From the sequence record NC_048173.1: a stretch of 64,000 nt of DNA, one strand, 5' to 3'. The position numbers and the translations under genes are program-made. Of the stretch, positions 3,924-45,016 are shown piece after piece (the first letter of the stretch is position 1; each line of letters opens with the position of its first letter). Below the pieces are notes generated by a model, which saw only the letters and a program-made list of their open reading frames with translations, did not search any database and was not told the origin of the DNA.

Positions 3924-4421
3924 ATGCTATCATTAAAGTTTCTTCGCGAGTCGACTATCGACGGGGATTTGTTCAACGCACCGGAGACGTATAAAGTCGT
4001 TACGGTGAATCAAGTCGGGGCTATGGGTCGGGGCATAGCACTCTCTTGCAAAGAACGTTATCCCAATGTCTATCGGGAGTACCGTAAGGCATGTCGTGAG
4101 AAACTTTATTTCCCCGACGATGTCATGGTGTTCGAAGAGGAGAAGATTATTCTCCTCGCCACTAAAGACGACTGGAAAGCCCCATCCACGGTTGAAATTA
4201 TTACACGTGGGTTATATGGTTTGAGTCGTCAACTCCCGAACCTTAAAGCCTCCATTGCCATTCCGCCGTTAGGAATGGTTAATGGTTGGCTGAAGAAATC
4301 CCAGCGTGCTGAGATTTTTTCTTTGGTCGTTGAACTTTTCCACAAACAAGACTGCAACGTGAGAGTGTACCTCCCGGACGTTTTGTATGAGGAGGTACGT
4401 GAGTTGTACCATTCCAAATAG
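3924..4421 (+). CDS. Macrodomain protein (DarG/Poa1p-like ADP-ribosylhydrolase family)
   Basis: Motifs VTVNQVGAMGRGIA..K.RYP, LATKDDWK and IAIPPLG..NG.L. Confidence 0.85.
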   Translation: MLSLKFLRESTIDGDLFNAPETYKVVTVNQVGAMGRGIALSCKERYPNVYREYRKACREKLYFPDDVMVFEEEKIILLATKDDWKAPSTVEIITRGLYGLSRQLPNLKASIAIPPLGMVNGWLKKSQRAEIFSLVVELFHKQDCNVRVYLPDVLYEEVRELYHSK

Positions 4422-4425
4422 GCAT

Positions 4426-4445
4426 GGATATATATTCTCATTGTG
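4426..4445 (+). promoter_or_regulatory. Early promoter motif variant
   Basis: GGATATATATTCTCATTGTG. Confidence 0.5.
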
Positions 4446-4573
4446 GCTAATAGATTAGTCCGAGAACATCACTTTATTAATTTCCGCAGGAGGCAGACTT
4501 AGGAACACCACGCCATTGGGGTAGTAGCTTTACTACAAACCAGCGTCTATCACTCTCACGAGGAACACGTTAA

Positions 4574-5431
4574 ATGAAACATTTATTTTTAGGCTTAGCA
4601 ATCCTGCTGACAAGCCTGCCCGCATTAGCATCAACATCCACGAGCGCTTCATGGGACCGCCATAAGCAGACGGTAGCCAAAGCAGCACACAAAGTTGGAG
4701 TATCACCCAAATTAGCCACCGCCATTGCCGGCCGTGAATCAGGCGGCAACGCCAAGGCAAGAAATCCACACTCCTCGGCCTCGGGCCTGATGGGAGTCAC
4801 GCGACCGACCGCTCGCACCATGCTGCGTAAATACGGTAAAGAGTTAGGACTCTCCCGTAACGCGGATATCATGAACCCAAAGGTCAACGCGCTGTTAGGG
4901 ACTGTCTATTTGAGAGAAGTCCGTCAGGAAATGAATCAACGCTTGGGTCGTCCAGCCCGGGACCACGAAGTGTATCTTGCATATCACTTTTCTCCCGCAA
5001 AAGCTGAACGCATTATTAAAGCGCGCCCTTCAAAACGCATGGTAGATATCTATCCCTCCGCAGCACGCGGTAACAAGGCATGGTATTACCACAAAGGCGG
5101 AAAGGCGAAGTCTGCCGCTGATGTAATTAGCATGGCACGAAACAAAGTCGGCAAAGAGTCGAAGTATGGTCACGAAGCTGTGTCAATAGCCGAGAATACA
5201 CAGAAGGCTAAAGCCGCTCCTACAACGTTAGCGAGTATGGCTACCACCACACCGGTCTGCATGGCAGACGTGGTATCTGAGTCGTCTCAGCCTCGTGAAC
5301 ACCCTTTATTGGTGAAAGGTACGTTAGGCACAAGCGTGATGTCACGCTGCCGTGACACCTCCACCTTGGACCCGGAGTTTGATACTGCGATGGTGCGGTA
5401 CTCCCTAAAAGAACAGTATTTGCGTTATTAA
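4574..5431 (+). CDS. Secreted lytic transglycosylase (SLT, phiKZ gp144/gp181-like catalytic domain)
   Basis: Signal peptide MKHLFLGLAILLTSLPALA; AIAGRESG catalytic Glu, SSASGLM, NALLGTVYL; aligns by eye with the SLT domain of the tape-measure protein in this window. Confidence 0.85.
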   Translation: MKHLFLGLAILLTSLPALASTSTSASWDRHKQTVAKAAHKVGVSPKLATAIAGRESGGNAKARNPHSSASGLMGVTRPTARTMLRKYGKELGLSRNADIMNPKVNALLGTVYLREVRQEMNQRLGRPARDHEVYLAYHFSPAKAERIIKARPSKRMVDIYPSAARGNKAWYYHKGGKAKSAADVISMARNKVGKESKYGHEAVSIAENTQKAKAAPTTLASMATTTPVCMADVVSESSQPREHPLLVKGTLGTSVMSRCRDTSTLDPEFDTAMVRYSLKEQYLRY

Positions 5432-5444
5432 TCAGGAGCAGACG

Positions 5445-5918
5445 GTGAAACAGAAACAGCCGGCTTATTATCGCCCTATTGCGGAGGCACTACGCCTTAC
5501 CGCGAATCAGGCAGTGAGTCAGACGTTGAAGAGTAACTTTGGCGTGAAGAGCACGTTTTATCGTGTGCATGATTGCCAGCATACGTTAGAGCATGCCTTA
5601 GAACGCCGTCATTTTGACTTTGACACAGCGTACGGATTGCTTTATCTGATGGGTTATCGCCCATCGTTATTAGAAACGGCTGACGGTCATGCGTTGTTGC
5701 TGCTCCCGTCTACGACCTATAACCGAACCATCACACTGGAAATTGCGACTCAGGAAGCGAAAGTGTATCTGGCCAGAACACTGAAGCTCTCTGATGAAAC
5801 GCTTTCTATTAAGAAGCAGTTGGCAGCTTTCGGCGACGGCCGTCAGATTCTGCGCGATACTTCACTTCCACGTGAGAAGTTCTTACTTGAGTACAAACGT
5901 TATGAAGACGCTGCTTGA
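5445..5918 (+). CDS. Hypothetical protein
   Basis: AGGAG RBS before GTG start. Confidence 0.75.
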   Translation: MKQKQPAYYRPIAEALRLTANQAVSQTLKSNFGVKSTFYRVHDCQHTLEHALERRHFDFDTAYGLLYLMGYRPSLLETADGHALLLLPSTTYNRTITLEIATQEAKVYLARTLKLSDETLSIKKQLAAFGDGRQILRDTSLPREKFLLEYKRYEDAA

Positions 5919-6411
5919 CCTGACCCGCTTTTACAACCAGCCAGACAGCAAGGAAGTGTTAGCGCTGACTATGCCGGTATTGGTCGAGGCGTGTCGTCTT
6001 GACGTCTCTGTGGAAACTGCACTCATCTCCTCAACCGCCATTACGGACTACGATGTCGAAGCGTATCTAAATTCGCAACATATCGTCGTACCGTATAACA
6101 TGCATGTGGTGATTGCGCCGGAACATCGGATGGTGTATCAAACGGCCACACCGGTTCCGTTGTTTGGGGATGCCTTATCCTACGACCTGACAGCAGCAAC
6201 CTTTTTCAAAACCGGCGTTGGTATGTCCTATCGCAAGTGGGCTCTTGCGGTGTGGGAAGACAACGCGGATGCGATTACGGTGCTCGCAGTCATGGACGAA
6301 GAACGGCTGGACCCTGAGGTGATTACTGTTACCAATGTTGAAGGGCGGACGAACGCGTGCATCTTTACGCCAGAGATGTGTTACGTGCGAATCGACCCAA
6401 GCAAACAATAA
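5902..6411 (+). CDS. Hypothetical protein
   Basis: Probable start ATG 5902 (MKTLLDLT) overlapping the previous gene; followed by a terminator. Confidence 0.7.
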   Translation: MKTLLDLTRFYNQPDSKEVLALTMPVLVEACRLDVSVETALISSTAITDYDVEAYLNSQHIVVPYNMHVVIAPEHRMVYQTATPVPLFGDALSYDLTAATFFKTGVGMSYRKWALAVWEDNADAITVLAVMDEERLDPEVITVTNVEGRTNACIFTPEMCYVRIDPSKQ

Positions 6412-6458
6412 AAAGGCACCCTACCCCCGTCGGGGGTAGGTCCTTAGTTTATTTTTTT
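6410..6458. terminator. Bidirectional intrinsic terminator
   Basis: CCTACCCCC/GGGGGTAGG stem flanked by A- and T-tracts between convergent genes. Confidence 0.8.
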
Positions 6459-7068
6459 AGCCCTTACTTGCCGCAATTTTCATCAGCTCATCATTGAGCT
6501 TTTGCAAGTCGTCAGCACGCTTTTGTAAAGTCGCCACTTGTTCCTCCAGTGGCACCGCGTCACGAATGTTCTGTTTACGCTTACTTTCCATTTCCACGTG
6601 CTGGGCGTTGTCGACCTGACCTTCGTAGCGCATTGTGGAGATATACGGCGTAGGGATAATACCCAACTTACCCTGCAGGTAGTTTGTGAAGTCCCCAGTG
6701 AAGGCTTGCACATCTACATAGTCAGGCAGAAGGGCTAAGTCCACCACCAACACATTCCGGTTGTACTTTAACCCGGTTAACCCCGGGTAGGAAGACAGGT
6801 ACGTGTTCGGCACATAACGCACTTCACCGTCGTTTGCCTTGAACACCAGAATCGATGCACTCGCCGCCGCATCAGCCTTATAATCGGCCTGAGTGATGTT
6901 ATGAGGCGCATAGTACGTGTCGTATACCGGCTTATTGTTGCGTTCTAACTCCGGGAAGGTACGAATCGCGTCTAAGCGATAGATAACCCCTTGCGGTAAT
7001 TCAAACGGCGAGAGACAGATAAATGTCCCTTCGCAGTTGATGGGGGGCGTTAGTGGTTTACGCGCCAT
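6457..7068 (-). CDS. Putative virion structural protein
   Basis: AGGAG RBS; coupled to the upstream minus-strand gene; resembles a conserved phiKZ-like structural pair by recollection and position. Confidence 0.6.
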   Translation of the reverse strand: MARKPLTPPINCEGTFICLSPFELPQGVIYRLDAIRTFPELERNNKPVYDTYYAPHNITQADYKADAAASASILVFKANDGEVRYVPNTYLSSYPGLTGLKYNRNVLVVDLALLPDYVDVQAFTGDFTNYLQGKLGIIPTPYISTMRYEGQVDNAQHVEMESKRKQNIRDAVPLEEQVATLQKRADDLQKLNDELMKIAASKG

Positions 7069-7077
7069 TTATTCTCC

Positions 7078-8415
7078 TTAGACGACTTCAGGCCAGACCG
7101 AAGTGCGACTGAGCACACGGTATTCCACGTTCTCATGTTCGAAGACGTAGAAGGCCAGCTCTTTGTTGTTTTCATCAACAACCTTCACCACATCGGTGGT
7201 GCCGGCATACGGATGGTACTCTTCAGCTGCAATCAAAGCCTGAATGTACAGACGAATCCACTCGGTGGTGGGTTTCGATACGCGTGAGATTTCACTGGAC
7301 GACGTAGAAATTAATGCGTAGTCCTTGATGGTCTCATGCAGTGTCTTTTTATTGTCTGCGTTTTCAGGTCCGCTGATGCACACTGCACTCAGTGATTTGT
7401 ACTGGGCAGGGACGAGACAAACATCGGTGGTTGGGAGTTTGTGCGGATTATCTTCATCGATAGCCGCCGTAGACCATTCACCAAACGCGTCAATCGACTT
7501 CAGGATGAAATCGTATGGCAACATCGGGGAGTACAGTGAAGCGACATCTTCCATGTTTGGAATGCCGCGAATCTTCCACCCCGGAATAAAGGTAAAGCGT
7601 GTGGTCGAGAACAAATCTGGGAAGACTTTTGCCCAGTCCTTTCGGCTATACCCCGACTGCGACAGAACCGCATCTTGATACGCTTCTTTGACGTAGGTCG
7701 GATTGCGACCCTGTGGGCCGTAAATGATACAGGTAAAGACAATATTCGGGATAGTGGATTCACTGTCCTCACGGTCATGCCAGGTGTAGTAGTTTGTCTG
7801 GATGGCCGTATAGGGGAACTTGTTTGCCATCTCGTTCACTTTATCGTGATGGTCAGGCAACGTCCACCCTGCTAATGCTTTTTCGACCACTGTCTTAACT
7901 GACTGGAAAGTGTCGATAGGATTCAACATCAAAATGACTTCGATGTCATAGCCACGGTAATCCTTGGCAAAATCTGCATCGGAGAACCAGAGACGGATTT
8001 CGTTCTCTTCCTGCCCTTCGAGCGTGTAGGCAATCCAACGTGGGAACCAGTTCCCCTTGCCTTCCACCATCGCGCCGGTAGAAACCTTAGAAATTTTGGA
8101 TGAAAACTGTCCGACCAGCAGACGTTGGAACTCGACCTCGTCGTTTTTCAACACGCCGTTAATCGCTTGTGAGTAGATCCACTGCGTAACTGTTAAAACG
8201 TTATCGGAGAACGACGACGGAACAGTAATGGCTACCTTATCTCGTTTCGAGGTGAAGGCAACCAGTTCCACCTGGGCGTTTGCTTTACTAAACCATTGTT
8301 TATCTTTAGCAAAGCTGGTAGCATACTCTGAGAGCTCCCCTACAGGAGCTGTAACACCGCCGGGTGTATTGTCTTTCAGCGGGCCAATATTGATGAACCC
8401 TTGTAAATCGTACAT
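7078..8415 (-). CDS. Putative virion structural protein (phiKZ-like conserved)
   Basis: 445-aa ORF with GGAG RBS; N-terminus MYDLQGFINI..L.DNTPG..APVGELS is typical of a conserved jumbo-phage virion protein (recollection). Confidence 0.65.
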   Translation of the reverse strand: MYDLQGFINIGPLKDNTPGGVTAPVGELSEYATSFAKDKQWFSKANAQVELVAFTSKRDKVAITVPSSFSDNVLTVTQWIYSQAINGVLKNDEVEFQRLLVGQFSSKISKVSTGAMVEGKGNWFPRWIAYTLEGQEENEIRLWFSDADFAKDYRGYDIEVILMLNPIDTFQSVKTVVEKALAGWTLPDHHDKVNEMANKFPYTAIQTNYYTWHDREDSESTIPNIVFTCIIYGPQGRNPTYVKEAYQDAVLSQSGYSRKDWAKVFPDLFSTTRFTFIPGWKIRGIPNMEDVASLYSPMLPYDFILKSIDAFGEWSTAAIDEDNPHKLPTTDVCLVPAQYKSLSAVCISGPENADNKKTLHETIKDYALISTSSSEISRVSKPTTEWIRLYIQALIAAEEYHPYAGTTDVVKVVDENNKELAFYVFEHENVEYRVLSRTSVWPEVV

Positions 8416-8435
8416 ATAACTACTCCGAGGTAAAT

Positions 8436-8948
8436 ATGGTAGCGGGTATAATTAAGCTCCTACCACTATTGACGTTTCTGCTGGAAGTATTCAAAACTGA
8501 CGACGGGAAATTCACCGCGAAAGCTAAGGCGTTTTGTCTCGCCATGTTCGCAGTATTCAGTTTCGCTGCTTACGTTTCGTACGCATACGTTCAGCAGTTT
8601 CACGCTTTAGTGGAACTGAAAGCTCATCAGCAGTACCTGATAAAGTCCGAAGGTGAGGCAGTCGGTCGTGCTCTACGTTTAGAGAACAGGATAACCGAGT
8701 TGGAAAACAAACTCGATATCTGCCGCTCCCGGCCGCCATATGAAGGTGCGTCATTAAAGCAGCCACCTCCAAAAGCAGCAGACATTGTCCCTATCCCAGT
8801 CGTAACAAAACCCGCCCCGATTCCCAAACGTCCCATTCCTTTCACTCCCGATGCTATCACTCACGTGACAGCTATCCCTCCTCGTGAGGATAAAGAGAAA
8901 GGAATTGCCGACCGCATGGATAAAATCACAAGGCACATTAATAATTAG
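8436..8948 (+). CDS. Membrane-anchored coiled-coil/Pro-rich protein, candidate inner-membrane spanin
   Basis: TM FCLAMFAVFSFAAYVSYAYV, coiled coil ending in Cys, Pro-rich tail; adjacent to a lipoprotein gene. Confidence 0.55.
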   Translation: MVAGIIKLLPLLTFLLEVFKTDDGKFTAKAKAFCLAMFAVFSFAAYVSYAYVQQFHALVELKAHQQYLIKSEGEAVGRALRLENRITELENKLDICRSRPPYEGASLKQPPPKAADIVPIPVVTKPAPIPKRPIPFTPDAITHVTAIPPREDKEKGIADRMDKITRHINN

Positions 8949-8956
8949 AGGTTTGT

Positions 8957-9403: not shown

Positions 9404-9408
9404 AAAAT

Positions 9409-9445
9409 GGGGTCTGTCCTTCGGGGCAGTCCCTTTTACTTTTTT
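9409..9445 (+). terminator. Intrinsic terminator
   Basis: TTCG-loop hairpin plus T-tract. Confidence 0.8.
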
Positions 9446-9487
9446 ACGCTATGACCTAATAGTGTGTATACAATAAGGAGACTGCCA

Positions 9488-11762: not shown

Positions 11763-11785
11763 ATACCATTTGAGGAGTAATAACA

Positions 11786-15250: not shown

Positions 15251-16729
15251 ATGGCTGGTCCGAAGAAGGCTACTCAAGGTGAGGCTATTCGCCCACGTTT
15301 TAATATCTGGACAATTTTTGACCATGCGCTGGGCGAGTACGTAAAGGGCGATGACGGCCTGTGGTACCTCAACGGTGGCTTTGGGCACATCATGGGCTTC
15401 GCAGGGCGCGGTAACACCTTTAAGTCGTTCCTGCTTGATTACTGTATCATGACCATCCTGCTGCGTTATCGTGCAGAGTGGGCATCGAAGTACGACACCG
15501 AAGTGTCTGCACAGCTCTCCCGTATGCAGACCGTGGTGCGTTGTGTCTGTACAGCGAACGGCTGGGATTTCGATTACGCCGAGCACGCGGTTGAAGTGAT
15601 GATGGAAAAAGGTTGCTTTAACATGCAATCTTCCGAACTGGTACCGGGCGAGCAGTGGTGGGCCGACTACATCCGTGATGAAGTTGAAGACCGCTACAAG
15701 CAATACATGGCCAGAAAGAACCTGCGTGAGACGCCGTTCCCTGACCCGATTCGTAAAGAAAACAAAAAGATGCTCAACCCGTGGGCGTACGGTTGCGATT
15801 CTCTGTCTGAGTGGAAAACCTCGAAGATGGAAGATGCCCGTGATGACTCTAATGTGGGTGACTCTGAGCAGAACGCCTTAGCCGCGCAGGATGCCAAACA
15901 GAAGTCCGACATGATGGGTCGTTGGCCGAACGCGTTGGCTCGTGGTCATTTCTACATGGGCTTTGTGGTTCACATCACTGACAACATGCAGATGGGGCGT
16001 ATTGAACCGGGCAAGAAGCTCGATGAGTTCAAAGGCAACATCAAGTTCGCTAACGTGCCGGGCCGTGCGGTAACCTTCCTCACCAACTCCCTGTTAGTAG
16101 CGACCCACTCCGGGGACTGTAAACAGCCAAGCAGCTTTAACTCCAAGACCGGGGTTGAAGAACCGATGTTCCCGTCCGCGGCACTGAAAGGGAAAAGTAG
16201 TTCCGTTAACGATCTGAAAATTATCCGTTACACTCAGTTCCGAGCCAAGTCAGGCCCAACCGGTGTGAAGATGGATATGATCTACTCGCAGGAGCTGGGC
16301 TTTATGCCGCACCTGTCGCTGTGGTATTACCTGAAAGAAACCCTGACCGGTGATTTTGGCTTTAACCGTTCAGGACATTTCTATGAGCTCCAACTCTTGC
16401 CGGGTGTGAAATTCGGTCGTACGACTATCTTTGACATGGCGTTAGAGAACCGTCGTTTACAGCGTGCGTTAGAAATTACTGCAGGCTTAGCCTACATGCA
16501 GAACAACTGGTTCCGTCTGGAGCCGGAGTACCATATCACGCCACAAGAGCTTTACGACAAAGTGAAGGAAGCCGGGTACGACTGGGATGAAATCCTGGAC
16601 AACACGGTAGAATATTGGCAGTTTAAAGACCAAGAGACAAAAACGTCCAAACGTTGCGTCACTGTGAAGACGCTGTTAGACATGGCGTTGAAAGGTCTTA
16701 AGCCGAAGTTCCTCACTGCGAAAAAATAA
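15251..16729 (+). CDS. uvsX: UvsX/RecA-like recombinase
   Basis: Walker A GFAGRGNTFKS, KYDTE, Walker B-like GCDSLSE, K.R..P.G.K motif; GGAG RBS. Confidence 0.85.
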   Translation: MAGPKKATQGEAIRPRFNIWTIFDHALGEYVKGDDGLWYLNGGFGHIMGFAGRGNTFKSFLLDYCIMTILLRYRAEWASKYDTEVSAQLSRMQTVVRCVCTANGWDFDYAEHAVEVMMEKGCFNMQSSELVPGEQWWADYIRDEVEDRYKQYMARKNLRETPFPDPIRKENKKMLNPWAYGCDSLSEWKTSKMEDARDDSNVGDSEQNALAAQDAKQKSDMMGRWPNALARGHFYMGFVVHITDNMQMGRIEPGKKLDEFKGNIKFANVPGRAVTFLTNSLLVATHSGDCKQPSSFNSKTGVEEPMFPSAALKGKSSSVNDLKIIRYTQFRAKSGPTGVKMDMIYSQELGFMPHLSLWYYLKETLTGDFGFNRSGHFYELQLLPGVKFGRTTIFDMALENRRLQRALEITAGLAYMQNNWFRLEPEYHITPQELYDKVKEAGYDWDEILDNTVEYWQFKDQETKTSKRCVTVKTLLDMALKGLKPKFLTAKK

Positions 16730-16738
16730 CTTTTGGCC

Positions 16739-16760
16739 GGGTAGGGGGCAACCCCTACCC
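16739..16760 (+). other. GCAA-loop hairpin without U-tract
   Basis: GGGTAGGGG-GCAA-CCCCTACCC between co-oriented genes. Confidence 0.7.
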
Positions 16761-16775
16761 TAAAGGACTTTAAAC

Positions 16776-17087
16776 ATGCGTTATCAAGACGTGATAGTAG
16801 AGCGGTTGCGTCAAGGTCTTGCAGGCGTTGACCACAGCCTCGCTCAGGAATTTGTTGATTGTTGTAGTCCACCGGCAACTACCCTGTATGAATTCTCTGA
16901 CCGTGTGAACCAGCATTTCGCTGGGTTGTTAAAAGCACACGGCGTGAAGCCACAGGCAAAGGACTTCGAAGTGCCGGAGGACAATGACGCCATTCCGTAC
17001 TGGGTGGAAGATTTGGAAAACCGTGTACACCCGGTATTAAAAGCTGCGCAGGGGAAGAAAGATGGCACTGAATCAACAGCTGCGTAG
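16776..17087 (+). CDS. Conserved hypothetical protein
   Basis: AAGGA RBS; lies between uvsX and the RNAP betaC gene. Confidence 0.75.
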   Translation: MRYQDVIVERLRQGLAGVDHSLAQEFVDCCSPPATTLYEFSDRVNQHFAGLLKAHGVKPQAKDFEVPEDNDAIPYWVEDLENRVHPVLKAAQGKKDGTESTAA

Positions 17088-19480: not shown

Positions 19481-20302
19481 ATGGACGACTTACAAAACTC
19501 GATAGAAGCCGGGCCACCGCAAGACCCGCCTACAGGCCGATATCTACAGAAGTGTTTCTGGGATCTTAACGATACGTTAGTCATCACCCCAGCTATCTGG
19601 AAACGTCTCGTAAAGGAGTATGTGGAAGACGAGCGATTCGTCGGCAAGTCAACAGCGACTCCCGAAGAACGCATGTCTCGTCTCACCACCGCATTGAGTC
19701 GTGGTAGCATTAAGCACCTGCAACCTGATTTAACATGGAAGCGGTTTATTGAAGGCTTAGTGTTTCTCAAGATTCAGTCATTACGTGTCACGGCAACCGC
19801 GAAACGCGGAAACTGGGGCGAGTCAAAGACCGTCTCTGCAATCACCCGTCCGGAAACGGATCACCTGAGAGCAGTGAACAAAGAAGATGAAGAAGTCTCG
19901 ACCGAATCGGTGGGACGGACGCTGAATCGGTTCTTTGACAACCCGGATAAAACCGCGACTCGGGTCATGGAACACATCTTACTGAAATTGTTCTGGCAGT
20001 TCATTGCTGCGTACAAGATTGATAGCCGTCGGTGGAAGGAGTTGTTAATCGCTTATGTGAACAACCCGAAAAACTGTCCGCAAATTAAATCGCGCCGTAA
20101 CGATGCACGTCATAACCTTCAACAATCCATTCGTCGAACCAAGAAGTTAACATGGCGCTTCTTCCTGAAAGCTCTGCAGGCTATTGATGTCCGCGAGTTG
20201 AAGATGGCGTTTCTCTTTACCACCGAAAGCGGGAAAGAGATTGAGTGTTACTTCAAAATCGATTTGACGAAGCATACGTTTAAGAGTGGTAAAGATGAGT
20301 AA
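19481..20302 (+). CDS. Protein with two tandem homologous helical domains, possible DNA-binding protein
   Basis: Start ATG 19481; repeated pattern WK.L...YV ... LTW..F...L. Confidence 0.75.
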   Translation: MDDLQNSIEAGPPQDPPTGRYLQKCFWDLNDTLVITPAIWKRLVKEYVEDERFVGKSTATPEERMSRLTTALSRGSIKHLQPDLTWKRFIEGLVFLKIQSLRVTATAKRGNWGESKTVSAITRPETDHLRAVNKEDEEVSTESVGRTLNRFFDNPDKTATRVMEHILLKLFWQFIAAYKIDSRRWKELLIAYVNNPKNCPQIKSRRNDARHNLQQSIRRTKKLTWRFFLKALQAIDVRELKMAFLFTTESGKEIECYFKIDLTKHTFKSGKDE

Positions 20303-21497
20303 TACTGTTCAGCCTGACCCGCGGCTAGTACAGGCCATGACCGAACTGCAAGACTATCAGGACAAGCTCGGCGAACGTATTAAAGCCGCGTCTGTTCGTG
20401 GTGCCGGCAGCGGTACTGGCCCAACTACCCGACCCACCATCTTTGAAACTGACCCGAAAGGTTTACTGCCCGACTTAGACCCGCTGCTGCGCAAGGTAGC
20501 AACGCCGTTTGAGGGGATGGATAAACTCGGGGACAGCGTACTGAAGTATTTTGACCCCACTGGAAAGTTGGGGAGCTTTGCGAAGAAGGCGGTTAACGCT
20601 TTACCGAGCGAGTTAAAAGAGGCCGGTACCAAACTGGCCCGTGGCGACGTCGTCGACGCTGCAAAAGGTATTACGGGGCTTAACAACTTCCGCGATTTGA
20701 AAAGTCTGGTCACCACAAAAGACGGTTCCTTCGGTTTAGACTTCTCTTCAGTGAAAGGTCGCATCGAGAAATCGTTTGGACTGGGTGGTAATGGTTTAGG
20801 TGGACTCTCTCCGGACGTGCAGAACCTCATTGGCAAAGCCGCGAATGAAGTGATGGGCGAAGGGAGTATGGGGATGGTGTGGAATGAAGTCTTCACGGCG
20901 GTACAGGGAGCGGACTTTGCTTCTGTCTCCAGCGTGACGGACGTCATTAACCGCATCGCGAAACAGTCTGACCTCTGGGATGTGTTTGACCTTAGCGGTG
21001 CTGCAGCATTGATTTACGGCTTGTCCGATAAGCTTATCGAGTGGGATGCCCCCGATATGCTGGACGATGTGCTCGATAAAATCAAAGATGTGAATGCGCA
21101 GAAAGCAATGCTCGATGAGCTGGCTATCCGTGCGTCGGCATCCGGTTCATTGTCCTCGACGGAACATTACGTCAGTCGACTGGATGCGAACCGTAAAGCG
21201 GCCATTGCCGATTTGGTCATCACAAACATGATGCGCAGCGTCAGTTTCTGGGCCTCGGATTCTCGTGACACCTCGTATGCTGAATACGGGAGTCGTCTGA
21301 AGAAACTGTTTGATAGCCTCGATCCGAACTGGGATAAAGACCCCTACGACAACACCGGGCACAGCTGCTATTACTTCACCCTGATGAACGATACGGCGTA
21401 TCAGGCGTTCTTAACGACTGACAAACGTCCGTTCTGCGCCGTCTTCGGCATCGTTCGTAGAGAAGATGTGGACACCATCATCTCTAACAACTTTTAG
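20286..21497 (+). CDS. Putative virion structural protein
   Basis: 403-aa ORF with Gly-rich amphipathic central part, in a late-type operon. Confidence 0.65.
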   Translation: MVKMSNTVQPDPRLVQAMTELQDYQDKLGERIKAASVRGAGSGTGPTTRPTIFETDPKGLLPDLDPLLRKVATPFEGMDKLGDSVLKYFDPTGKLGSFAKKAVNALPSELKEAGTKLARGDVVDAAKGITGLNNFRDLKSLVTTKDGSFGLDFSSVKGRIEKSFGLGGNGLGGLSPDVQNLIGKAANEVMGEGSMGMVWNEVFTAVQGADFASVSSVTDVINRIAKQSDLWDVFDLSGAAALIYGLSDKLIEWDAPDMLDDVLDKIKDVNAQKAMLDELAIRASASGSLSSTEHYVSRLDANRKAAIADLVITNMMRSVSFWASDSRDTSYAEYGSRLKKLFDSLDPNWDKDPYDNTGHSCYYFTLMNDTAYQAFLTTDKRPFCAVFGIVRREDVDTIISNNF

Positions 21498-21508
21498 TGG
21501 GAACGAGT

Positions 21509-22525
21509 ATGACTACAATTGACCCGAAAGTAGTACCGTTAACACGCCTCGCAGGACTGTTGAGAGTGTTAACGCTGGGTACGCGCTACGACCAGTCTTG
21601 CCAAGGAGCCGGTAAAGAGAAAGTCATTGCCCGTATCAGACACGATATGCTGTTAGAGCAGGTGTTCCCGTCAAAGTTCGAAGTGGGGATGTCTGAGCTA
21701 ATGCTACTCGAGATTTATAAAACGGGGAAATACGACGCGACGTACGGCGTGGCAATGGCGCAACGTAACGGTTTAAATATACCGAAGGCGAATGCCAATG
21801 ACTACGACGTCACCAAATGCAGTGTGCGGTCACTGAGCCACCATCCCGGTCCTGTTCGTCACGACCGCGATACGGAATTCTTCATTCACATGCGCCGCAT
21901 CGGTGCCGTGCCTATTACGGGTGAGAAAGATGACGGTACTGACGGGGTCAACCATGTCAATATCTATTCGGACGGTCGCACCACAGTAGGTCGCCTGGCA
22001 AGTAATTTCAGTGAGGGTCCGTTTGACACACCCGACGGCACGTTCTTTACGCTCGAAGGCTACTACCACTGGCTGCGCATTCGTGACTGGACACTGGCCA
22101 CCAAATACGCTTTTAACATGGCAGATATGGAAGATACGTATCCGAGCCTACGGAAATTGCGGACCGTAACCGGTACAGAAGCAATTCGCTTAGGGCGCAT
22201 ACTCAAGTCCAACATCTACGGCGGTACGAAATACCGCACGGGGCCGTTCTCGAAAGAGTCGCTGGAGCGTTTTCGTTGGGCGTTGGCCGGAAAGTTACAC
22301 AAGCTGCGTTACAATAATGTGACACTGGGTAATTATTTGTCGATGATGGTGTATTGTGGTTTCACGTTGACGCACTATTACGTGTACAACGGTAAAGTGA
22401 AATACCCGGACTTCCGCGAATGGCTACCTAACTTATTGTCTGGCTTGTTGGAGCATATCGATCCCAATGATTCGGACTTCGATTTAGCCGCGCTACAAGC
22501 GAAAATAACTGAGGGTTCCGTATGA
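21509..22525 (+). CDS. NADAR (YbiA/T4 gp30.3-like) domain protein with N-terminal extension
   Basis: HVNIYS...GRLASNF..PF.TPDG.F.TLEGYYHWLR, EAIRLGR, WALAGKL. Confidence 0.7.
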   Translation: MTTIDPKVVPLTRLAGLLRVLTLGTRYDQSCQGAGKEKVIARIRHDMLLEQVFPSKFEVGMSELMLLEIYKTGKYDATYGVAMAQRNGLNIPKANANDYDVTKCSVRSLSHHPGPVRHDRDTEFFIHMRRIGAVPITGEKDDGTDGVNHVNIYSDGRTTVGRLASNFSEGPFDTPDGTFFTLEGYYHWLRIRDWTLATKYAFNMADMEDTYPSLRKLRTVTGTEAIRLGRILKSNIYGGTKYRTGPFSKESLERFRWALAGKLHKLRYNNVTLGNYLSMMVYCGFTLTHYYVYNGKVKYPDFREWLPNLLSGLLEHIDPNDSDFDLAALQAKITEGSV

Positions 22526-23190
22526 GTGGTTTCAGTCTGAATGCCCTGCTTCAAGGGCTGGACAAAGACAAGGAGTGGGGCCATCAACAGGCAGCTCAAG
22601 AATCAATCTCCACGGAGAAAGAGAAAGAGTATTGCATGTGGGTGAAGCCGACGTCTGCGGGTTGGCAGTGGCTGGGTGAGCAGCAAAGCACCCCGACACT
22701 CGACATCCTGATGCCTATTGAAGGTGCTCGTCGTCGTTGCCGTATTCGTCCGGATGGGGCACAGCTGACGTACAAGCAACGGGTGAACAACGAAACTGTG
22801 GAAGAGAACAGCGATGTCGGTTTTGCGATGGCGTTGTCGTTCTATGCTGACGGGTTTAACTCGCACCTGTTCCGCCGAATTCGTCTGGAAGCCAGTCCTG
22901 AACTGATGGGTCAAGGTGCAAAGCATTGGGACATCGATATTTTCCATATCGTACCCCAGCATCCTAACCTGCCGGACATTCAGGCGTTGAATGAGCTGTC
23001 TGACACTTTACGTCAAAGCACCGCGTACGGCGATTTAGTCAAAGTGGAGCTGGAGGTCGAGAAGTTCTTTACTGACAGTATCCGTGACCTGATTCCGTTT
23101 GAAGTGGAGGCAGTGTACTCCTCTCGTCCGAAAGACGAAGAGACGCAAGTGATGCTTGCCGATTACTGGGACAATGTCACCAGTATTTAA
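22522..23190 (+). CDS. CYTH (triphosphate tunnel metalloenzyme) domain protein
   Basis: EKEKEY (ExExK-like), RCRIR, LTYK, EENS, WDIDIF, VELEVE. Confidence 0.75.
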   Translation: MSGFSLNALLQGLDKDKEWGHQQAAQESISTEKEKEYCMWVKPTSAGWQWLGEQQSTPTLDILMPIEGARRRCRIRPDGAQLTYKQRVNNETVEENSDVGFAMALSFYADGFNSHLFRRIRLEASPELMGQGAKHWDIDIFHIVPQHPNLPDIQALNELSDTLRQSTAYGDLVKVELEVEKFFTDSIRDLIPFEVEAVYSSRPKDEETQVMLADYWDNVTSI

Positions 23191-25578: not shown

Positions 25579-25579
25579 C

Positions 25580-39900: not shown

Positions 39901-41065
39901 TGACTCACTTATCGACGATGACAAACGTTGGAACTTCGTGAATATCCAAATGGGGTCTGCACAAGCTGCAGAGGGGCACGTAGTTACTCCTTACCAAACC
40001 GGTCAGGGGAAACTTGTGGCACACCGTACCTCAACCAAACATGCACGCATTCTGGACAAAGACGCAACGGTGTTAGACGTAACGCCTGATGCGATTCGCG
40101 TTCGTTATGCCGACAAGACTGAAGAGTCGTTCCCACTAGGACGCTGGTTCGGAGCACACGAAGGTCAACTCTATCCGCATGACATGGTTACCAATTGGAA
40201 GAAGGGCGACAAGCTCAAAGCCAAAACCGTGATGACGTACAACAGCAAACACTTTGCCCCGGACTACTATAACCCGACGCAAGTCAACTGGAAGAATGGC
40301 GCTTTGGCGACCGTCGTTCTGATAGAGGGTGAAGAGACGTACGAGGACTCCAACGCAATTGACAGTACCATTGCGAAGCAGTTAGAGGCAGAGACAACCA
40401 AACCGAAGGAAGTGGTCATCGGCTTTAACCAGAACATCCTTGAGGTTATCAAAGAGGGCAGTGAGGTGGACATCGATACCATCCTATGCACCTTTAGCGA
40501 CAACCTGTCTGGCGATATGGAGAACTTCTCAGAAGAGTCCGCAGCGACGCTGCATGACTTGAGTGCATTTGCACCGCGTGCTGGCGTGCGTGGTCGAGTG
40601 GACAAAATCGAGATTGTCTATCACGGCGAAATCGAAGAGATGTCTCCGTCTGTCGGTGAGCAGGTTCGTAAGTACGACCGGATACGCAAACGGGAAGCTG
40701 CGGCTTCGAATGAAGAGCTGACCTCCACTGGCGCGGTAACAGGCGATTACCGTGTTGATGGTGTTCCACTGGCGTATCAGTCTGTCTGTGTGAAATTCTA
40801 CATCTCGCATTTAACGGAGATGGCAGCAGGCGATAAAGCGGTGGTAGCGAACCAGCTGAAAACCACGGTGCAGTATCGCATGGTCGGCACGAACGAAACT
40901 TATTCAGGTCGTCCTATCAACGTGTACTTTGGCCGTAACTCGGTTGAAGCACGTATCGTGGGCTCGCTCTACAACATCGGTACGTCGAACTTCATTGCTG
41001 TTGAAAGCGGGAAGAACGTGCTGAAGATTCTTGCCGGGGAGAATATCCCACTGCTGAGAATGTAA
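36908..41065 (+). CDS. rpoB: Virion RNA polymerase beta subunit N-terminal piece (phiKZ gp178-like)
   Basis: 1385 aa; GGTGGR, DNGDVGI, sandwich-barrel-hybrid motifs, YEDSNAI, GDK..VANQLKT, GRNS..AR. Confidence 0.92.
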   Translation: MLLIKQFNRMFSVRMLQEYGAPRIISLDKLKIPRGSIYHSFDMSGEIAPPQTLPILELEKPAQIRHHAKLAAEGLVGRPIPVPVQGQERTILQYHRNNRQMRRMKSEEVIMKDMRTLLVENYAPILPRYRYADTIFAWYDRLRNLMITMRDQIAEDAAKFPRQNYIMIDVGDTMPAFNRFRNTYADRTNKGKMENFQSWNLLWLLELFAWADGDRDNSLIGQMDMTQLSRINIILTHNQAFTTINLGMLERLRDGDKGKLSDDQMARRFYRTVVAVMTQPPIQNIDTDFVTPLGDELHVERHDPAEDITPIQDLDDSELEAEIARFDQQMFDAEEEVKVSKPKEDQKPTTIVVEKAISHDAIIQQELDKLAEAGRLSAKAYQVLKEAPGKFKQLPNPYNPKETYGDALVIKDEELEVVPEVVFKDATLVEDSWVENTTDEMIRRYNKTMLPKDILGAVASSQRLGLVIHDHRVEKEYAVTGNVEHHSLRIQPVGGEPTTVHFSMPILDRDGNWRANGVDYTMRRQRVDIPIRKVAHDTVALTTAYGKNFVTRSEKVVNDYGRWLTNEVVIRAIDIKDTHISDARLANVFDPAYVLPKQYTMMARRVATFNSMGYMWNFDVKKMDEFFGKEIMADMAKKKLTPVAKGKAGQIAMDDQSQLYIVKGDKVEAQGTLTDLLAIDATKAPKEVSELSLMGKSISLGFVFSYYLGLTGMLKHFGVRYEVLPPGQRLDKSEYDMIIRLADAKIVVMCDSDQQRMVVNGMDKYLKHMTTYTESEMEREDVYLNLLMEGDKLTARYVNELTLMRKGFVDDMHARILRRMGEPETFIGLLERANEMLTNDHTKPEINGEEMMFVGNARLAYHLYGALAKANRNYLNAPVSQRRFELPNELVWGAINSDPSVLVTQGANPIQSIKEKDVITMGGTGGRDRKTMVKHTRAFTKSDLGVVSGDTVDNGDVGITSFLSANPQFATVDGLTKPRELDGQPIGSLMSFCVGLAPDSLIDDDKRWNFVNIQMGSAQAAEGHVVTPYQTGQGKLVAHRTSTKHARILDKDATVLDVTPDAIRVRYADKTEESFPLGRWFGAHEGQLYPHDMVTNWKKGDKLKAKTVMTYNSKHFAPDYYNPTQVNWKNGALATVVLIEGEETYEDSNAIDSTIAKQLEAETTKPKEVVIGFNQNILEVIKEGSEVDIDTILCTFSDNLSGDMENFSEESAATLHDLSAFAPRAGVRGRVDKIEIVYHGEIEEMSPSVGEQVRKYDRIRKREAAASNEELTSTGAVTGDYRVDGVPLAYQSVCVKFYISHLTEMAAGDKAVVANQLKTTVQYRMVGTNETYSGRPINVYFGRNSVEARIVGSLYNIGTSNFIAVESGKNVLKILAGENIPLLRM

Positions 41066-41070
41066 ACCAC

Positions 41071-41093
41071 CCTGCCGGGTCGCTCCCGGCAGG
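41071..41093 (+). other. Hairpin without U-tract
   Basis: CCTGCCGGG-TCGCT-CCCGGCAGG between co-oriented genes. Confidence 0.65.
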
Positions 41094-41116
41094 TTATCTA
41101 ACTTCCGGAGTTAACC

Positions 41117-41407
41117 ATGGATATTATTCAACAGATTAAACTGCGTTCGGGTCAGGCAGCGTCTAACCCGCAGCAGACTACGGACACCGCAAGCTACAAC
41201 CCTAAGATGCGTTTGAACTATCTCACCATGGCCAACGCCGTTGAGTTGTCAACCGAAATCATTGCCGCGGTTATCAAAAGCAGCAATGGGGTCAGTGGTG
41301 AAGTGGGCGGCGCGCGTTTACTTAAGCGCGATATCGCGGATATGACAGCAGCACGCATGGCAGCACGTCTGTCGGAAGCAGCGGCATCCAAAGGGGATAA
41401 CCAATAA
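41117..41407 (+). CDS. Small putative virion protein
   Basis: GGAG RBS; lies in the vRNAP/head operon. Confidence 0.7.
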   Translation: MDIIQQIKLRSGQAASNPQQTTDTASYNPKMRLNYLTMANAVELSTEIIAAVIKSSNGVSGEVGGARLLKRDIADMTAARMAARLSEAAASKGDNQ

Positions 41408-42849
41408 TGATTAACGTCTACTCTTTTAATGCCATTACGCAAGCGATGGACGTCGCGAAGGCAAACAATTTGAAAGTAGTGACCTGTCAGGACAGCCCGG
41501 TTGATTTACTGAACCGTGCTGCGTCTGGCCCGTCTCTGCTGAACGCTGGCATTACCGATGAAGAGTTTATTCATCGTCTGCCGGACGAGCTGAAAATCGG
41601 CGCTATCCTCGGCGAAGGGAAAGAAGTGGCTTTCGTTAAAGACGGTGCCCACTCTTCGCTCGTGCCGATTAGCGAACACGAGATGACGCTGAAAGAGCTG
41701 GTGAAAATGGCGAGCGGCCGTATTGCCGGTCTGCTGGACTTCTCCCGTAACGTGGCACAACCGTTTATCCGTTCTGTGATTGAACAGATTAACGAGCCGG
41801 CCCCTACTGAAGTAGTAGAGGAGTGGTCTCTGGTGCCTATCGCGCTGGACTCTATCTTTGATGCCCCGGTCGTACAGGGTATGCTGAAATCCGTTCCGAA
41901 CCTGCAAGTGGCGAGCTATGAGTACGATCGTTTAGACGGTCTGCAAGTGCCGGCTAACCTGCCAGTGCCAGTGACCGGCTCTAAAGCGTACGATGACCTG
42001 ATTGTCATCCTGCTGAACGACCTGAAAGTGACCCCGGCTGAACTGATGACGCAGGCCATTGCCGGTTGCGGCATGAACCCGTTCCGCCCTGAAGCATGGC
42101 GTGTGGTCAAAGAGCGTGTAGCCACCATGTTGCTGGCGGCGTACTACGTGGAAAACCCGTGGGTTGATTCCGGCATCACGTCGACCAAGTGGGATCTGTA
42201 CCTGCCGCGCGTTTCCGTCGCGAATATCGCCTGGCTGATGACTTACCTGAACCAGTTGAACGATAAAGTGAAAGCTGGTCAGACCGTGCTCTCTATCGAT
42301 GGCGATAGCATGAACGTGTACGTGTGTCAGGAAGTCTACTCCGTGTACGTCGAGCAAGGCGGTTGCGCAGAAGCCCTGCTGGGCGCGGTGTACTCGCAGG
42401 AAGACGAAGACGGTGGCCCGGTTTCCACTAACGCCACCTACCTGCTGGAAAACCAGAACCAGCTGGTCTCTGCATGGTCACGTCGCAGCGCAGTCAGCAA
42501 AGCAGCACAGGAAACCGACTGGGTTAACCTGCACCGTACCAACCTGAAGAACTCGTTCTATCAACAGATTGGAGCGGCGGAACAAGGTCATCTGGGCTTC
42601 CCGGCCGACGTGGCACGTAAACAGTGCTCTGAGTCCATCGACAAGTGCTTCGGTCGTCAGACGACGGACATCACCGAGTTTGCCATTGAAGTGGCGGCGC
42701 GCGATGTGTTCGGTGACGAGTCGGTAGGCCGTATCCTCAAAGCGATTCACCGTGGCATGAAAGACGGCGTTGAGCCGGATGTGGCTGCGCGTGATGAAGT
42801 GGTTGAGTACGTACTGGACTGGGTACTGGGTAGCCTGTATTTAGAATAA
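41407..42849 (+). CDS. Putative head structural protein (phiKZ gp177-like)
   Basis: 480 aa; synteny between vRNAP beta and the beta'C/protease genes. Confidence 0.65.
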   Translation: MINVYSFNAITQAMDVAKANNLKVVTCQDSPVDLLNRAASGPSLLNAGITDEEFIHRLPDELKIGAILGEGKEVAFVKDGAHSSLVPISEHEMTLKELVKMASGRIAGLLDFSRNVAQPFIRSVIEQINEPAPTEVVEEWSLVPIALDSIFDAPVVQGMLKSVPNLQVASYEYDRLDGLQVPANLPVPVTGSKAYDDLIVILLNDLKVTPAELMTQAIAGCGMNPFRPEAWRVVKERVATMLLAAYYVENPWVDSGITSTKWDLYLPRVSVANIAWLMTYLNQLNDKVKAGQTVLSIDGDSMNVYVCQEVYSVYVEQGGCAEALLGAVYSQEDEDGGPVSTNATYLLENQNQLVSAWSRRSAVSKAAQETDWVNLHRTNLKNSFYQQIGAAEQGHLGFPADVARKQCSESIDKCFGRQTTDITEFAIEVAARDVFGDESVGRILKAIHRGMKDGVEPDVAARDEVVEYVLDWVLGSLYLE

Positions 42850-42859
42850 GGAAGAGAGA

Positions 42860-43582
42860 ATGAACGCCATTGAAACAGCTTCGCGTGACCCGAAGAAGGT
42901 GCATGCGGATTTAGTAGACCGGGATAACATGACCCTCACCAAAGGGGGTTGTTACATCTACATTCCGGTTGGGTTTGCATCGAAAGAGATGGCGTTCATC
43001 TCTTCTGAAGTTCTTATCATGGGGTTGTTTGCCATCTCCACTGACCGTAAAACATACGGCGTCTCCAACGTTACGACGTTGATTGAAATTACCCCCACCA
43101 CATTTGAACAGGTGGATTTATTTGGGGAGCCGTATTACGAGTTTCGATTTGACCCGGGCACTGTGGTGTTCCCGAACCGGATGCTTTCTTGCTTACCCGG
43201 TCACGTGTACAACATTGTCTCGTATCTGTACGATTACGGGAATGTGCCTTTTTGGATGAATGCTGTCGACCACGCCGAATTACTTGCCGATGTGCCGTTG
43301 TGGAATACGTTTAAAGTGTTCAACGACCAAATAGACCGCGACGTTTACGCCGCCCACATCCAACGTAATCCTAAAAACGTCCGTGAGTTTTTCCGCGCCA
43401 GTCTGAAAAAGGATAGCGATATTTATAACCCGGTGCAATTCATTCCTCTACGTGACGGTTCTTTGAACAAAACGTCTCGGCTGGCGAAACTGTCCGACAC
43501 GGAACTCCGCCGTGGTATCCGGTCAGCCTTAACCAACGACCCGGTTCGTGCCGAGCCGCTCGAAGACATCTTTATGCGATAA
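42860..43582 (+). CDS. Probable virion RNA polymerase beta' C-terminal piece (phiKZ gp176-like)
   Basis: Immediately upstream of the prohead protease as in phiKZ/SPN3US; C-terminal SRLAKL....L..GI..AL....E..EPLE resembles the beta' C-terminal region. Confidence 0.7.
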   Translation: MNAIETASRDPKKVHADLVDRDNMTLTKGGCYIYIPVGFASKEMAFISSEVLIMGLFAISTDRKTYGVSNVTTLIEITPTTFEQVDLFGEPYYEFRFDPGTVVFPNRMLSCLPGHVYNIVSYLYDYGNVPFWMNAVDHAELLADVPLWNTFKVFNDQIDRDVYAAHIQRNPKNVREFFRASLKKDSDIYNPVQFIPLRDGSLNKTSRLAKLSDTELRRGIRSALTNDPVRAEPLEDIFMR

Positions 43583-43597
43583 AATTTGGAGGATTGC

Positions 43598-44401
43598 ATG
43601 GAAAATATGACGTTGCGCTATAACTGCGTAGCGCTGGCCGGGGTCAACAACCCTCAGCAACTGCAGCGTGATGGGGATTACTACCGCGTGCTGTTAGGCG
43701 CACTGAACGTGTTCAACTCTGAGAACATCTTCTACACCTACAACGAATCGAAACACGTGTTCGAGCGTTCCAGTGTGTTCATGCGCAAGATTGCTGCCGG
43801 TAACCTGTTCGGGGAGTGTGACCACCCGGAATGGGCACAGGGTATGACCGAAGCCGAATTCATGGAGCGCAATGAGTGGATTGAAATCACCAACACGGCG
43901 TTCCATATTCGCGACGTGGATGTCATCACGACCGATGAGATGTGCAATGGCCAGCCGGTCGTGGAAATCTGGGGATGGATTAAACCAGAAGACAACGACC
44001 TCGGTCGTCGCCTGCGCGCCGGTCTGGACAACCCGCACCAAAACGTGTGCTTCTCTCTGCGTGCGATTGTACGCCAGGGGGTCATCGGTGGCGTACGTAC
44101 TCGTCGTATCGATAAGCTGGTCACCTTTGACTGGGTTATTGAAGACGGGCTGCGTATCTGTAACAAATACTCCAGCATGGTTCGTGGGTCTACTGTTGCG
44201 CAAGAGTCTACGCGTACGTATATCGACCGCCCAGTGAGTCGTGAAGCGTGTGAGCAATTGATTGCCACGGGTGCCCGACAACTGGCTGTCGCTACGGAGT
44301 CCCGCCGTGCGTCGGTGGTGAGCTCAGCGCGAGAGTACCTCAAAACGATTGACAGTCGTCCTACGGTGAAACATGTTGGCATGGGAGCGAGGGCTTGGTA
44401 A
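43598..44401 (+). CDS. Prohead (head maturation) serine protease (phiKZ gp175-like)
   Basis: GECDHP (His), FSLRA (Ser), VTFDWVIE (Asp); C-terminal AQE/ATE candidate autocleavage sites. Confidence 0.88.
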   Translation: MENMTLRYNCVALAGVNNPQQLQRDGDYYRVLLGALNVFNSENIFYTYNESKHVFERSSVFMRKIAAGNLFGECDHPEWAQGMTEAEFMERNEWIEITNTAFHIRDVDVITTDEMCNGQPVVEIWGWIKPEDNDLGRRLRAGLDNPHQNVCFSLRAIVRQGVIGGVRTRRIDKLVTFDWVIEDGLRICNKYSSMVRGSTVAQESTRTYIDRPVSREACEQLIATGARQLAVATESRRASVVSSAREYLKTIDSRPTVKHVGMGARAW

Positions 44402-45016
44402 ATGGCGTTGTTATCGTCGTTGGAATTATGGCGTAACGGACAGAATCCCAAGCTTTACTCGCGATTGCGGCCTCGCGGGATTGAGACCGCACCTTTGCAC
44501 ATCAGTGCAAACCCTGTTCGTAAATTTATACCTCGTATTCCGTTGTCCTGTGCGCCGGGCGAAGACCAAACGGTCGCTCGTGTCTGTTGTGCATTATCGT
44601 TGGAGAACTGTTTCAAGGGTGCAGCCTGGAATTTCAAAGGAGTCCCTCCGAAGAGATTCCACGTGTATGGTTTCAATGAAGACGCGGTGATTGACCCCAC
44701 CCCGACTCTGACTCAGGAACCGTCTCGGAACGGTGAGGTTTGGATTGTGCCTCACCGTTTATCGAATTGGGATTTAACACCAGAAGCCGTAGGGCAGATG
44801 CGCTTGCATTCGCATACGGAAAATTTGGGTCGCTTTACTTACATCTTGCAGACTTACACGGATGTGATTCTCAATGATGAACAGACCCTCGGCGCGGGGT
44901 GGTGGAAAATCGTTGTCCATTTCAATGGCAATAACGGTATAACCCTATCTTACGACGGGGAATCAAACAGTAATGAATTTGGTAACGCGGCAAATGTTTA
45001 TTCGGTCATTAGCTAG
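44402..45016 (+). CDS. Hypothetical protein, candidate ADP-ribosyltransferase fold
   Basis: LHIS....FIPRIP...ED.T..RVCCALSLENC...FHVY...GEVWI pattern; start codon directly follows the protease stop. Confidence 0.5.
   Translation: MALLSSLELWRNGQNPKLYSRLRPRGIETAPLHISANPVRKFIPRIPLSCAPGEDQTVARVCCALSLENCFKGAAWNFKGVPPKRFHVYGFNEDAVIDPTPTLTQEPSRNGEVWIVPHRLSNWDLTPEAVGQMRLHSHTENLGRFTYILQTYTDVILNDEQTLGAGWWKIVVHFNGNNGITLSYDGESNSNEFGNAANVYSVIS

Follow-up and report, generated by a model that had tools for sequence, protein, structure and literature searches.

Phage proteins comparable to the products of each of three genes in the genome of the Erwinia jumbo phage Derbicus have been described, by experiment or in silico. 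The stretch of DNA analysed here (the window) is the final 64 kb of that genome (223,950 bp), with which it is identical, and window base 1 is record base 159,951. The three genes are gp183, which encodes a DarG-type macrodomain, gp206, which encodes a NADAR-like protein, and gp221, which encodes a protein with a fold like that of ADP-ribosyltransferases (ARTs). The closest described counterpart of the first is AdfM (anti-DarT factor macro), the product of phiKZ gp104 (Morgan et al., Cell Rep 2026; PMC13309987). AdfM strips DarT2-made ADP-ribose from DNA, rescues DarT2 toxicity and shields phiKZ from DarTG2, and its activity is lowered by the N23A substitution. Homologues of AdfM are found in about half of chimalliviruses, and those of Asesino, phiKZ and PhiPA3 localise to the phage nucleus (PMC13309987). 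The second gene is best compared with AdfN and other phage NADARs (T4 gp30.3, Bas32 and Bas60; PMC11825919) within the NADAR superfamily, which includes YbiA and DarG1 (PMC11543638), and the third with T4 Alt. An in silico catalogue of Macro, NADAR and SLOG combinations among jumbo phages was published by Iyer et al. in 2021-2022 (PMC7824862, PMC9503650).

We favour, with moderate confidence, the view that the Derbicus genes serve two separate ADP-ribose functions: a pair of intracellular erasers (gp183 and gp206) and an independent, head-packaged ART-like enzyme (gp221). The macrodomain would most likely strip DarT2-made ADP-ribose from thymidine in single-stranded phage DNA, and gp206 would most likely strip base-linked ADP-ribose that is beyond the reach of the macrodomain, with guanine, modified as by DarT1, as the default expectation. 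Together they would form one counter-defence module, split in Derbicus and aimed at host DarT-type enzymes. gp221 shares a transcript with the prohead protease gene, to which its translation is probably coupled; its product would most likely be packed in the capsid, be ejected with the DNA and, as T4 Alt does, use NAD+ to act on a target of the host or of early infection. Within this scheme we infer the enzymatic activities and substrates, the ejection of gp221 and its independence from the erasers.

The genes had been singled out in a first-pass annotation of the window. The open reading frames that it gave (3924-4421, 21509-22525 and 44402-45016) are exact and coincide with the annotated coding sequences gp183, gp206 and gp221, each of which occurs once in the Derbicus genome. 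They are also unlinked, as that annotation had it, lying 17 and 22 kb apart in three separate gene runs. The record labels gp183 'putative APPr-1-p processing domain protein' and the other two 'hypothetical'; among its other entries in the window are split RNA-polymerase genes, a tail sheath gene and one for a head maturation protease. What is established directly is the presence and synteny of the genes, their homology and conserved residues, and the modelled folds, and the head location of the gp221 orthologue in phage SPN3US comes from published data.

Outside the window, at 15296-16990, the Derbicus genome carries a homologue (43% identity, E 1e-136) of Asesino gp039, the experimentally confirmed chimallin (ChmA) of that phage. 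Derbicus is therefore a nucleus-forming chimallivirus, and it most probably belongs to the PhuZ-less clade of Erwinia, Salmonella and Cronobacter phages. Searches of the Derbicus genome by tblastn with the chimallin, PicA and PhuZ of phiKZ gave no match, which we attribute to divergence. EarlPhillipIV and pEa_SNUABM_38 are near-identical to Derbicus, and Cronobacter phage CR5 is a relative closer than family level. NCBI taxonomy assigns the genus Derbicusvirus to no family, despite the chimallin homologue.

The macrodomain gene is the simplest of the three:

3924..4421, plus strand: gp183, stand-alone DarG-type macrodomain of 165 amino acids (matches to DarG hidden Markov models (HMMs), AdfM orthologue, Asn29 and Lys81 kept)

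The DarG-type assignment made in the first-pass annotation is borne out by the DarG models of PADLOC (E 1.5e-32) and NCBIfam (antitoxin_DarG, E 2.2e-32). gp183 covers positions 4-154 of the 338 in the DarG profile; it has the macro half only, for which reason its antitoxin_DarG score falls under the full-length cut-off. The closest solved structures in a search of PDB sequences are the DarG macrodomain of Mycobacterium tuberculosis (5m3i, E 7e-19) and Thermus aquaticus (Taq) DarG (5m31, E 7.5e-16), and the match to the generic Pfam Macro family is marginal (16 bits). gp183 and both structures share the TVN motif and, within PTKKHW, the T-K pair. N29 aligns with N23 of the phiKZ protein and with the TVN of both DarG structures, and K81 with the first Lys of PTKKHW; these residues would correspond to the catalytic Asn (N22) and Lys (K80) of Taq DarG, given an inferred numbering offset for the tagged PDB chain. 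gp183 thus resembles the bacterial DarTG2 antitoxin in its macrodomain (E ~1e-32 to DarG HMMs) and in the catalytic Asn and Lys. It differs in that it has no C-terminal DarT-binding domain and no adjoining DarT gene, its neighbours being a hypothetical gene and a transglycosylase, and it is therefore an orphan antitoxin-like enzyme and not a component of a toxin-antitoxin system.

gp183 is 32% identical to AdfM (BLASTP, E 5e-24) and 46% identical both to the sole macro match in the Asesino genome and to SPN3US gp196. Judged by these alignments, it is the orthologue of AdfM, the chimallivirus anti-DarT2 factor. Both are stand-alone, chimallivirus-encoded, DarG2-like macrodomains of ~160 amino acids with an aligned catalytic Asn. 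They differ in that the activity and nuclear import of AdfM have been shown by experiment, whereas gp183 is known from its sequence. This part of the finding is real and is already explained by the published AdfM work.

The second eraser gene, gp206 (21509-22525), has an annotated ATG at 21509 and an alternative GTG start at 21497, which overlaps the gp205 stop codon. Its product has two parts:

21509..21922, plus strand: N-terminal helical extension of gp206, residues 1-138 (helices at 8-130 in the AlphaFold2 model)
21923..22474, plus strand: NADAR-fold domain of gp206, residues ~139-322 (SNF 165-167, Glu183, Arg190, His289)

An AlphaFold2 model built on 20 relatives (pLDDT 88.8, pTM 0.84) has a YbiA-like fold: the top three matches in a fold search are NADAR structures, clearly ahead of all others, the best PDB match by Foldseek is YbiA (prob 0.97), and NADAR-named AlphaFold clusters rank after the protein's own family. 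Alignment with T4 gp30.3/AdfN (hhalign, MAFFT) places SNF165-167 on SNF18-20, Glu183 on Glu36 and Arg190 on Lys43. hhalign between the gp206 family and T4 gp30.3 as a lone sequence brings the catalytic motif into register, but with poor statistics (Prob 3.8), and a search for relatives of T4 gp30.3 returned near-identical T4-like sequences only, too alike for a profile. Mutations of E36 and K43 weaken T4 AdfN, and equivalent Glu/Lys pairs, seven residues apart, are found in PnNADAR (E43/K50) and the E. coli C7 NADAR (E88/K95). In the gp206 family the Glu is invariant and the Lys position (Arg190) is occupied by Arg in all 20 aligned members. His289 is likewise invariant, lies in the C-terminal beta-hairpin and is common to the single-domain phage homologues. 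Phage gp30.3-type NADARs are reported to have a catalytic His in the last hairpin in place of the Glu/Asp of cellular families, and the two His residues were matched by their position in the hairpin, not by superposition.

Sequence searches gave no such link. gp206 is recognised by no model of Pfam, NCBIfam or PADLOC, and it matches neither NADAR (PF08719) nor Phage_30_3 (PF08010) at E up to 1. Pfam likewise yields no NADAR family for its relatives, either the 14 in the alignment (E up to 5) or four single-domain homologues from phages (E up to 0.1). When the Derbicus genome is searched in six frames with PF08719, gp206 is not recognised, and the family profile gives chance matches only among PDB sequences. 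For one single-domain phage homologue, the record annotator mentions similarity to NADAR. Full-length relatives are limited to SPN3US-, Asesino- and Wellington-like jumbo phages, and hundreds of other large phages encode single-domain proteins homologous to the C-terminal ~180 residues. The N-terminal extension is largely absent from shorter relatives such as SPN3US gp224, which start at about profile position 61; residues 1-138 gave no informative fold or feature match (language-model search score 0.62).

On the evidence of its model, gp206 is a divergent member of a known NADAR kind, with a NADAR fold, a partly canonical active site and one catalytic residue replaced. It shares with AdfN and the phage NADARs the fold, the SNF motif, an equally spaced Glu, a putatively equivalent His in the last beta-hairpin and its status as an orphan phage gene. 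It differs from them in having no HMM similarity to PF08719 or PF08010, in the Arg for Lys and in its extra 138-residue helical domain; in relatives the family domain is, in addition, fused to SLOG and adjoins a macro gene. The NADAR assignment of the first-pass annotation thus stands for the fold, with YbiA as top match, for SNF and for the Glu, but finds no backing in sequence models or at the Lys, which is Arg.

The gene lies within gp205-gp207 (20295-23190), flanked by homologues of SPN3US gp223 (tail) and gp225 (head), and overlaps gp207 by 4 nt; it is a non-structural gene inside a structural gene run. SPN3US gp223 and gp225, which flank gp224, are present in the virion tables of a 2023 mass-spectrometry study, and SPN3US gp224 (NADAR) and gp196 (macro) are absent from these tables (PMC10052503). 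In the Salmonella jumbo phages SPFM1, SPFM15, SPFM20 and SPFM12 the gp206 homologue is in short or rearranged pieces (157-284 amino acids, 6-19% of the query), and one of them (P0024) aligns with segments that are seemingly permuted. Such pieces may reflect true disruption of the gene or artefacts of assembly or of the record start.

The two erasers are adjacent in Deimos-Minion (NC_041972.1, 114016-115373), an Erwinia chimallivirus of a genus other than that of Derbicus. Its DarG-like macro gene, gp157, is followed 30 nt downstream by gp158. In this protein the gp206 family domain is matched by the first 158 residues (hhalign Prob 98.1, E 9.6e-14), and the C-terminus gives a weak YAcAr/SLOG match (E 1.3e-4, under the Pfam cut-off). 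Both erasers therefore behave as a module in relatives that is split in Derbicus, which supports the two-eraser toolkit and at the same time indicates that the combination is not new. The likeness to the jumbo-phage Macro-NADAR-SLOG modules of the in silico surveys (PMC7824862, PMC9503650) is in the co-occurrence of the domain types, with macro followed by NADAR-SLOG in Deimos-Minion; the difference is that the Derbicus erasers are 17 kb apart and gp206 has no detected SLOG. The suggestion that the combination had gone undescribed in phiKZ-like phages is thus partly outdated, by AdfM in 2026 and by the cataloguing of Macro/NADAR/SLOG and of virion-packaged ARTs in 2021-2022 (PMC7824862, PMC9503650).

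It is possible, though we consider it on the unlikely side, that gp206 does not serve to remove DarT1-type ADP-ribose from guanine. It could act on another N-glycosidic substrate (ADP-ribosylated cytidine or RNA, soluble ADP-ribose-derived immune signals or a nucleotide metabolite) or be a binder only. The uniform replacement of the catalytic Lys by Arg (20/20) and the failure of every NADAR HMM to find gp206 would fit such a divergence of substrate, as would the relatives fused to the nucleotide-binding SLOG domain, since published work connects fusions of this kind with soluble signals derived from NAD+. Reversal of cytidine ADP-ribosylation by NADARs has also been reported (PMC12945103). 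Against this, every NADAR subfamily tested to date hydrolyses ADP-ribosylated guanine, three unrelated phage NADARs counter DarTG1, and in Deimos-Minion the neighbouring gene encodes a DarG-type DNA eraser, which points to a common role in DNA repair. The proposal that the phage neutralises both DarTG classes thus keeps its footing in the presence of both eraser classes and in the orthology of gp183 to AdfM, but its anti-DarT1 half is a prediction for a gp206 that has Arg in place of Lys.

The third gene, gp221, lies immediately behind that of the prohead protease:

43586..44401, plus strand: gp220, prohead (head maturation) protease (64% identity to SPN3US gp245)
44402..44797, plus strand: ART-like core of gp221, residues ~1-132 (conserved His33-x-Ser35, Glu54-Asp55, Arg60, Tyr89, Glu112 and Trp114)
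44798..45016, plus strand: C-terminal beta-sheet domain of gp221, residues ~133-204 (strands at 128-187 in the model)

The gp220 stop codon abuts the gp221 ATG with no gap. Synteny with SPN3US is exact, gp218-gp223 corresponding to SPN3US gp243-gp248, and gp221 is 45% identical to SPN3US gp246. Four lineages (Derbicus, SPN3US, Deimos-Minion and a metagenomic relative) show the family linked to the protease: gp175, the Deimos-Minion homologue, is directly upstream of the protease gp176, and an uncultured relative (~23% identical) is encoded downstream of a Peptidase_S80 gene, at a distance of two small genes. In Table S2 of the mass-spectrometry study SPN3US_0246 (23.9 kDa) is classed 'Head', with 116, 111 and 95 peptide-spectrum matches in wild-type virions (~107) and 127, 121 and 118 in tailless heads (~122), numbers comparable with those for the protease and for a virion RNA-polymerase subunit (PMC10052503). 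Because this 45%-identical orthologue is a head protein, gp221 is plausibly virion-delivered, and its location in the head is, by homology, well supported. Ejection into the host, and any processing, would follow by analogy. A conserved prohead-protease cleavage motif in gp221 was sought and rejected, as the G-I-E at 28-30 is not kept in relatives. A second small enzyme-like protein may be packaged alongside gp221: gp223 (45451-46008, plus strand; 185 amino acids) has an N-terminal DxDGV-type motif typical of HAD-family nucleotidases, and SPN3US gp248, which is 46% identical to it, is a head protein in the same mass-spectrometry table.

Searches of Pfam, NCBIfam and PADLOC place gp221 in no family, apart from a PHROG of unknown function, and both the single sequence and the family profile give chance-level matches to PDB sequences. 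Searched against 1.84 billion cluster representatives, a profile built from ten close relatives gives 748 proteins at E up to 1e-3, most of them 210-250 amino acids long, and none of 100 sampled relatives has a Pfam ART domain. Assignment to the ART superfamily comes from the AlphaFold2 model (pLDDT 94, pTM 0.89), as the ten best matches in a wide search are all members, and from language-model neighbours, 53 of the 100 nearest clusters being Arr-type rifampin ARTs. In an alignment of 101 relatives (16-40% identical) Arg60, Glu112 and Trp114 are invariant, His33 is kept in 100, and Ser35, Pro44, Glu54, Asp55 and Tyr89 are nearly invariant. In the model [LY]-His33-x-Ser35 is on a strand, Arg60 on the next and Tyr89 on a third, and a later strand begins with Glu112; these motif residues (His33/Ser35, Arg60, Tyr89, Glu112) are 88-100% conserved. 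Glu112 follows the post-strand-4 loop, the usual place of the ART catalytic Glu, and the second motif fits neither H-Y-E enzymes, which have Tyr there, nor R-S-E enzymes, which have S-T-S. The ART fold proposed in the first-pass annotation is thus favoured by the fold searches but by no sequence family, and the canonical triad is not clean.

Full-length structural homologues occur in Noxifer, Eowyn, Ea35-70 and Stratton, all named 'uncharacterized', and distant relatives are fused to HNH, to Pol-beta NTase and, weakly, to YoeB, with no clear functional clue. Two size classes seem to exist in the family. The C-terminal domain is absent from short paralogues such as phiKZ gp283 (NC_004629.1, 257085-257549; 154 amino acids), a core-only protein (E 1.6e-10, profile positions 32-123) whose gene is not adjacent to the phiKZ prohead protease, and short core-only viral matches are seen as well. 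Deimos-Minion has a second, short family match at 60395-60613. As far as we have found, the head-packaged ART-like family is unnamed; the comparison covered the surveys apart from the ART list in their supplement. T4 Alt is similar in its ART-superfamily fold (for gp221, by model), in a gene placed among head genes and in the presence of the SPN3US orthologue in heads, and these last two features make delivery with the DNA plausible, as for Alt. It differs in that there is no sequence similarity, in size (204 amino acids for gp221 against 682) and in the active site, a His/Arg/Tyr/Glu motif against R-S-E. RES-domain toxins and Arr-type small ARTs also differ: the RES order (Arg...Glu...Ser) and the Arr H-Y-D map poorly onto gp221, which has an added beta-sheet domain and, by its orthologue, a virion location.

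gp221 may, on a tentative alternative that we hold to be unlikely, be no transferase at all. It could be an NAD+ degrader of the RES/MbcT type, a Tpt1/KptA-like RNA 2'-phosphotransferase, or an inert protein of head assembly or the internal body with an ART-like fold. Neither an H-Y-E nor an R-S-E triad can be cleanly assigned, because Arg60 stands at the expected place of the second motif, the gene lies amid head-assembly genes, and many SPN3US head proteins are structural. The three polar residues that are invariant or nearly so across the 101 divergent relatives argue instead for catalysis; Glu112 is where the ART catalytic Glu usually stands, the language-model neighbours are Arr-type transferases, and depletion of NAD+ would seem costly for a phage that relies on host metabolism.

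A more ambitious proposal is that the gp221 family is an ART lineage that forms a conserved capsid cargo of nucleus-forming phages, injected to ADP-ribosylate a host target before the nucleus forms. In its boldest form gp221 would mark DNA or RNA, and the macro and NADAR proteins of the phage would later reverse the mark on phage molecules. We regard the proposal as distinctly unlikely in full. The idea of a virion-delivered writer is partly supported: delivery is plausible, given SPN3US gp246 in the head by mass spectrometry, and activity as a writer is putative.

Several points weigh against the division into an eraser pair and a head-packaged ART-like enzyme. gp206 is missed by all NADAR HMMs, has Arg where the catalytic Lys (C7 K95, T4 K43) is expected and, in its model, carries the extra extension. 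T4 AdfN failed to rescue DarT1 toxicity outside infection, so a NADAR fold is no guarantee of anti-DarT1 function. The head location of gp221 is that of an orthologue in another phage, and its putative pocket was read from the order of residues on strands and not from coordinates.

Evidence that ties gp221 to the erasers in one system was sought, and none was found. In all genomes examined gp221 is linked to neither eraser. PADLOC gives no match for the three proteins other than DarG for gp183, and no eraser is adjoined by an ART gene. All five chimalliviruses checked have a member of the gp221 family. A gp206-type NADAR is not detectable in phiKZ, which has a macrodomain and the short ART-like paralogue. 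All three families are jointly present in Derbicus, SPN3US and Asesino, as expected from vertical descent within one clade. Published surveys of jumbo phages give 56% for macro, ~48% for NADAR and more than 40% for ARTs, so that co-occurrence alone is unremarkable.

A self-contained circuit, in which head-delivered gp221 writes ADP-ribose on DNA or proteins early and gp183, gp206 or both later erase it from phage molecules, was also put forward in the first-pass annotation and is very improbable: writer-like and eraser-like proteins do coexist in all PhuZ-less clade members checked, their presence in and absence from virions would suit the timing, and the invariant Arg and Glu of gp221 are reminiscent of the DarT catalytic pair, but the circuit is not supported because the gene runs are separate and the phyletic spreads differ (gp221 widespread, macro in about half of chimalliviruses, gp206-type NADAR not found in phiKZ), and in addition gp221 has no match in a PADLOC library that includes DarT-system models, AdfM is sufficiently explained as a factor against host DarT2, and co-occurrence in one clade is what descent predicts.

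If the eraser pair works as proposed, Derbicus-like phages would have a defence against DarT DNA ADP-ribosylation of either chemical class. The AdfM result of 2026, that the phage nucleus alone leaves chimallivirus DNA unprotected, would thereby be extended, and the pair is relevant to the selection and engineering of phages against fire blight. gp206, as a NADAR that current sequence models miss and that has Arg for Lys, offers a useful test of what determines NADAR substrate specificity. The gp221 family is the most interesting element of the three and may matter most: all chimallivirus lineages examined have it, its SPN3US member is confirmed as part of the head, and public records label it just 'uncharacterized'. 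Its presence in heads, together with a predicted fold like that of an NAD+-using modifying enzyme, makes it a concrete candidate for an ejected enzyme of host takeover or early protection in nucleus-forming phages.

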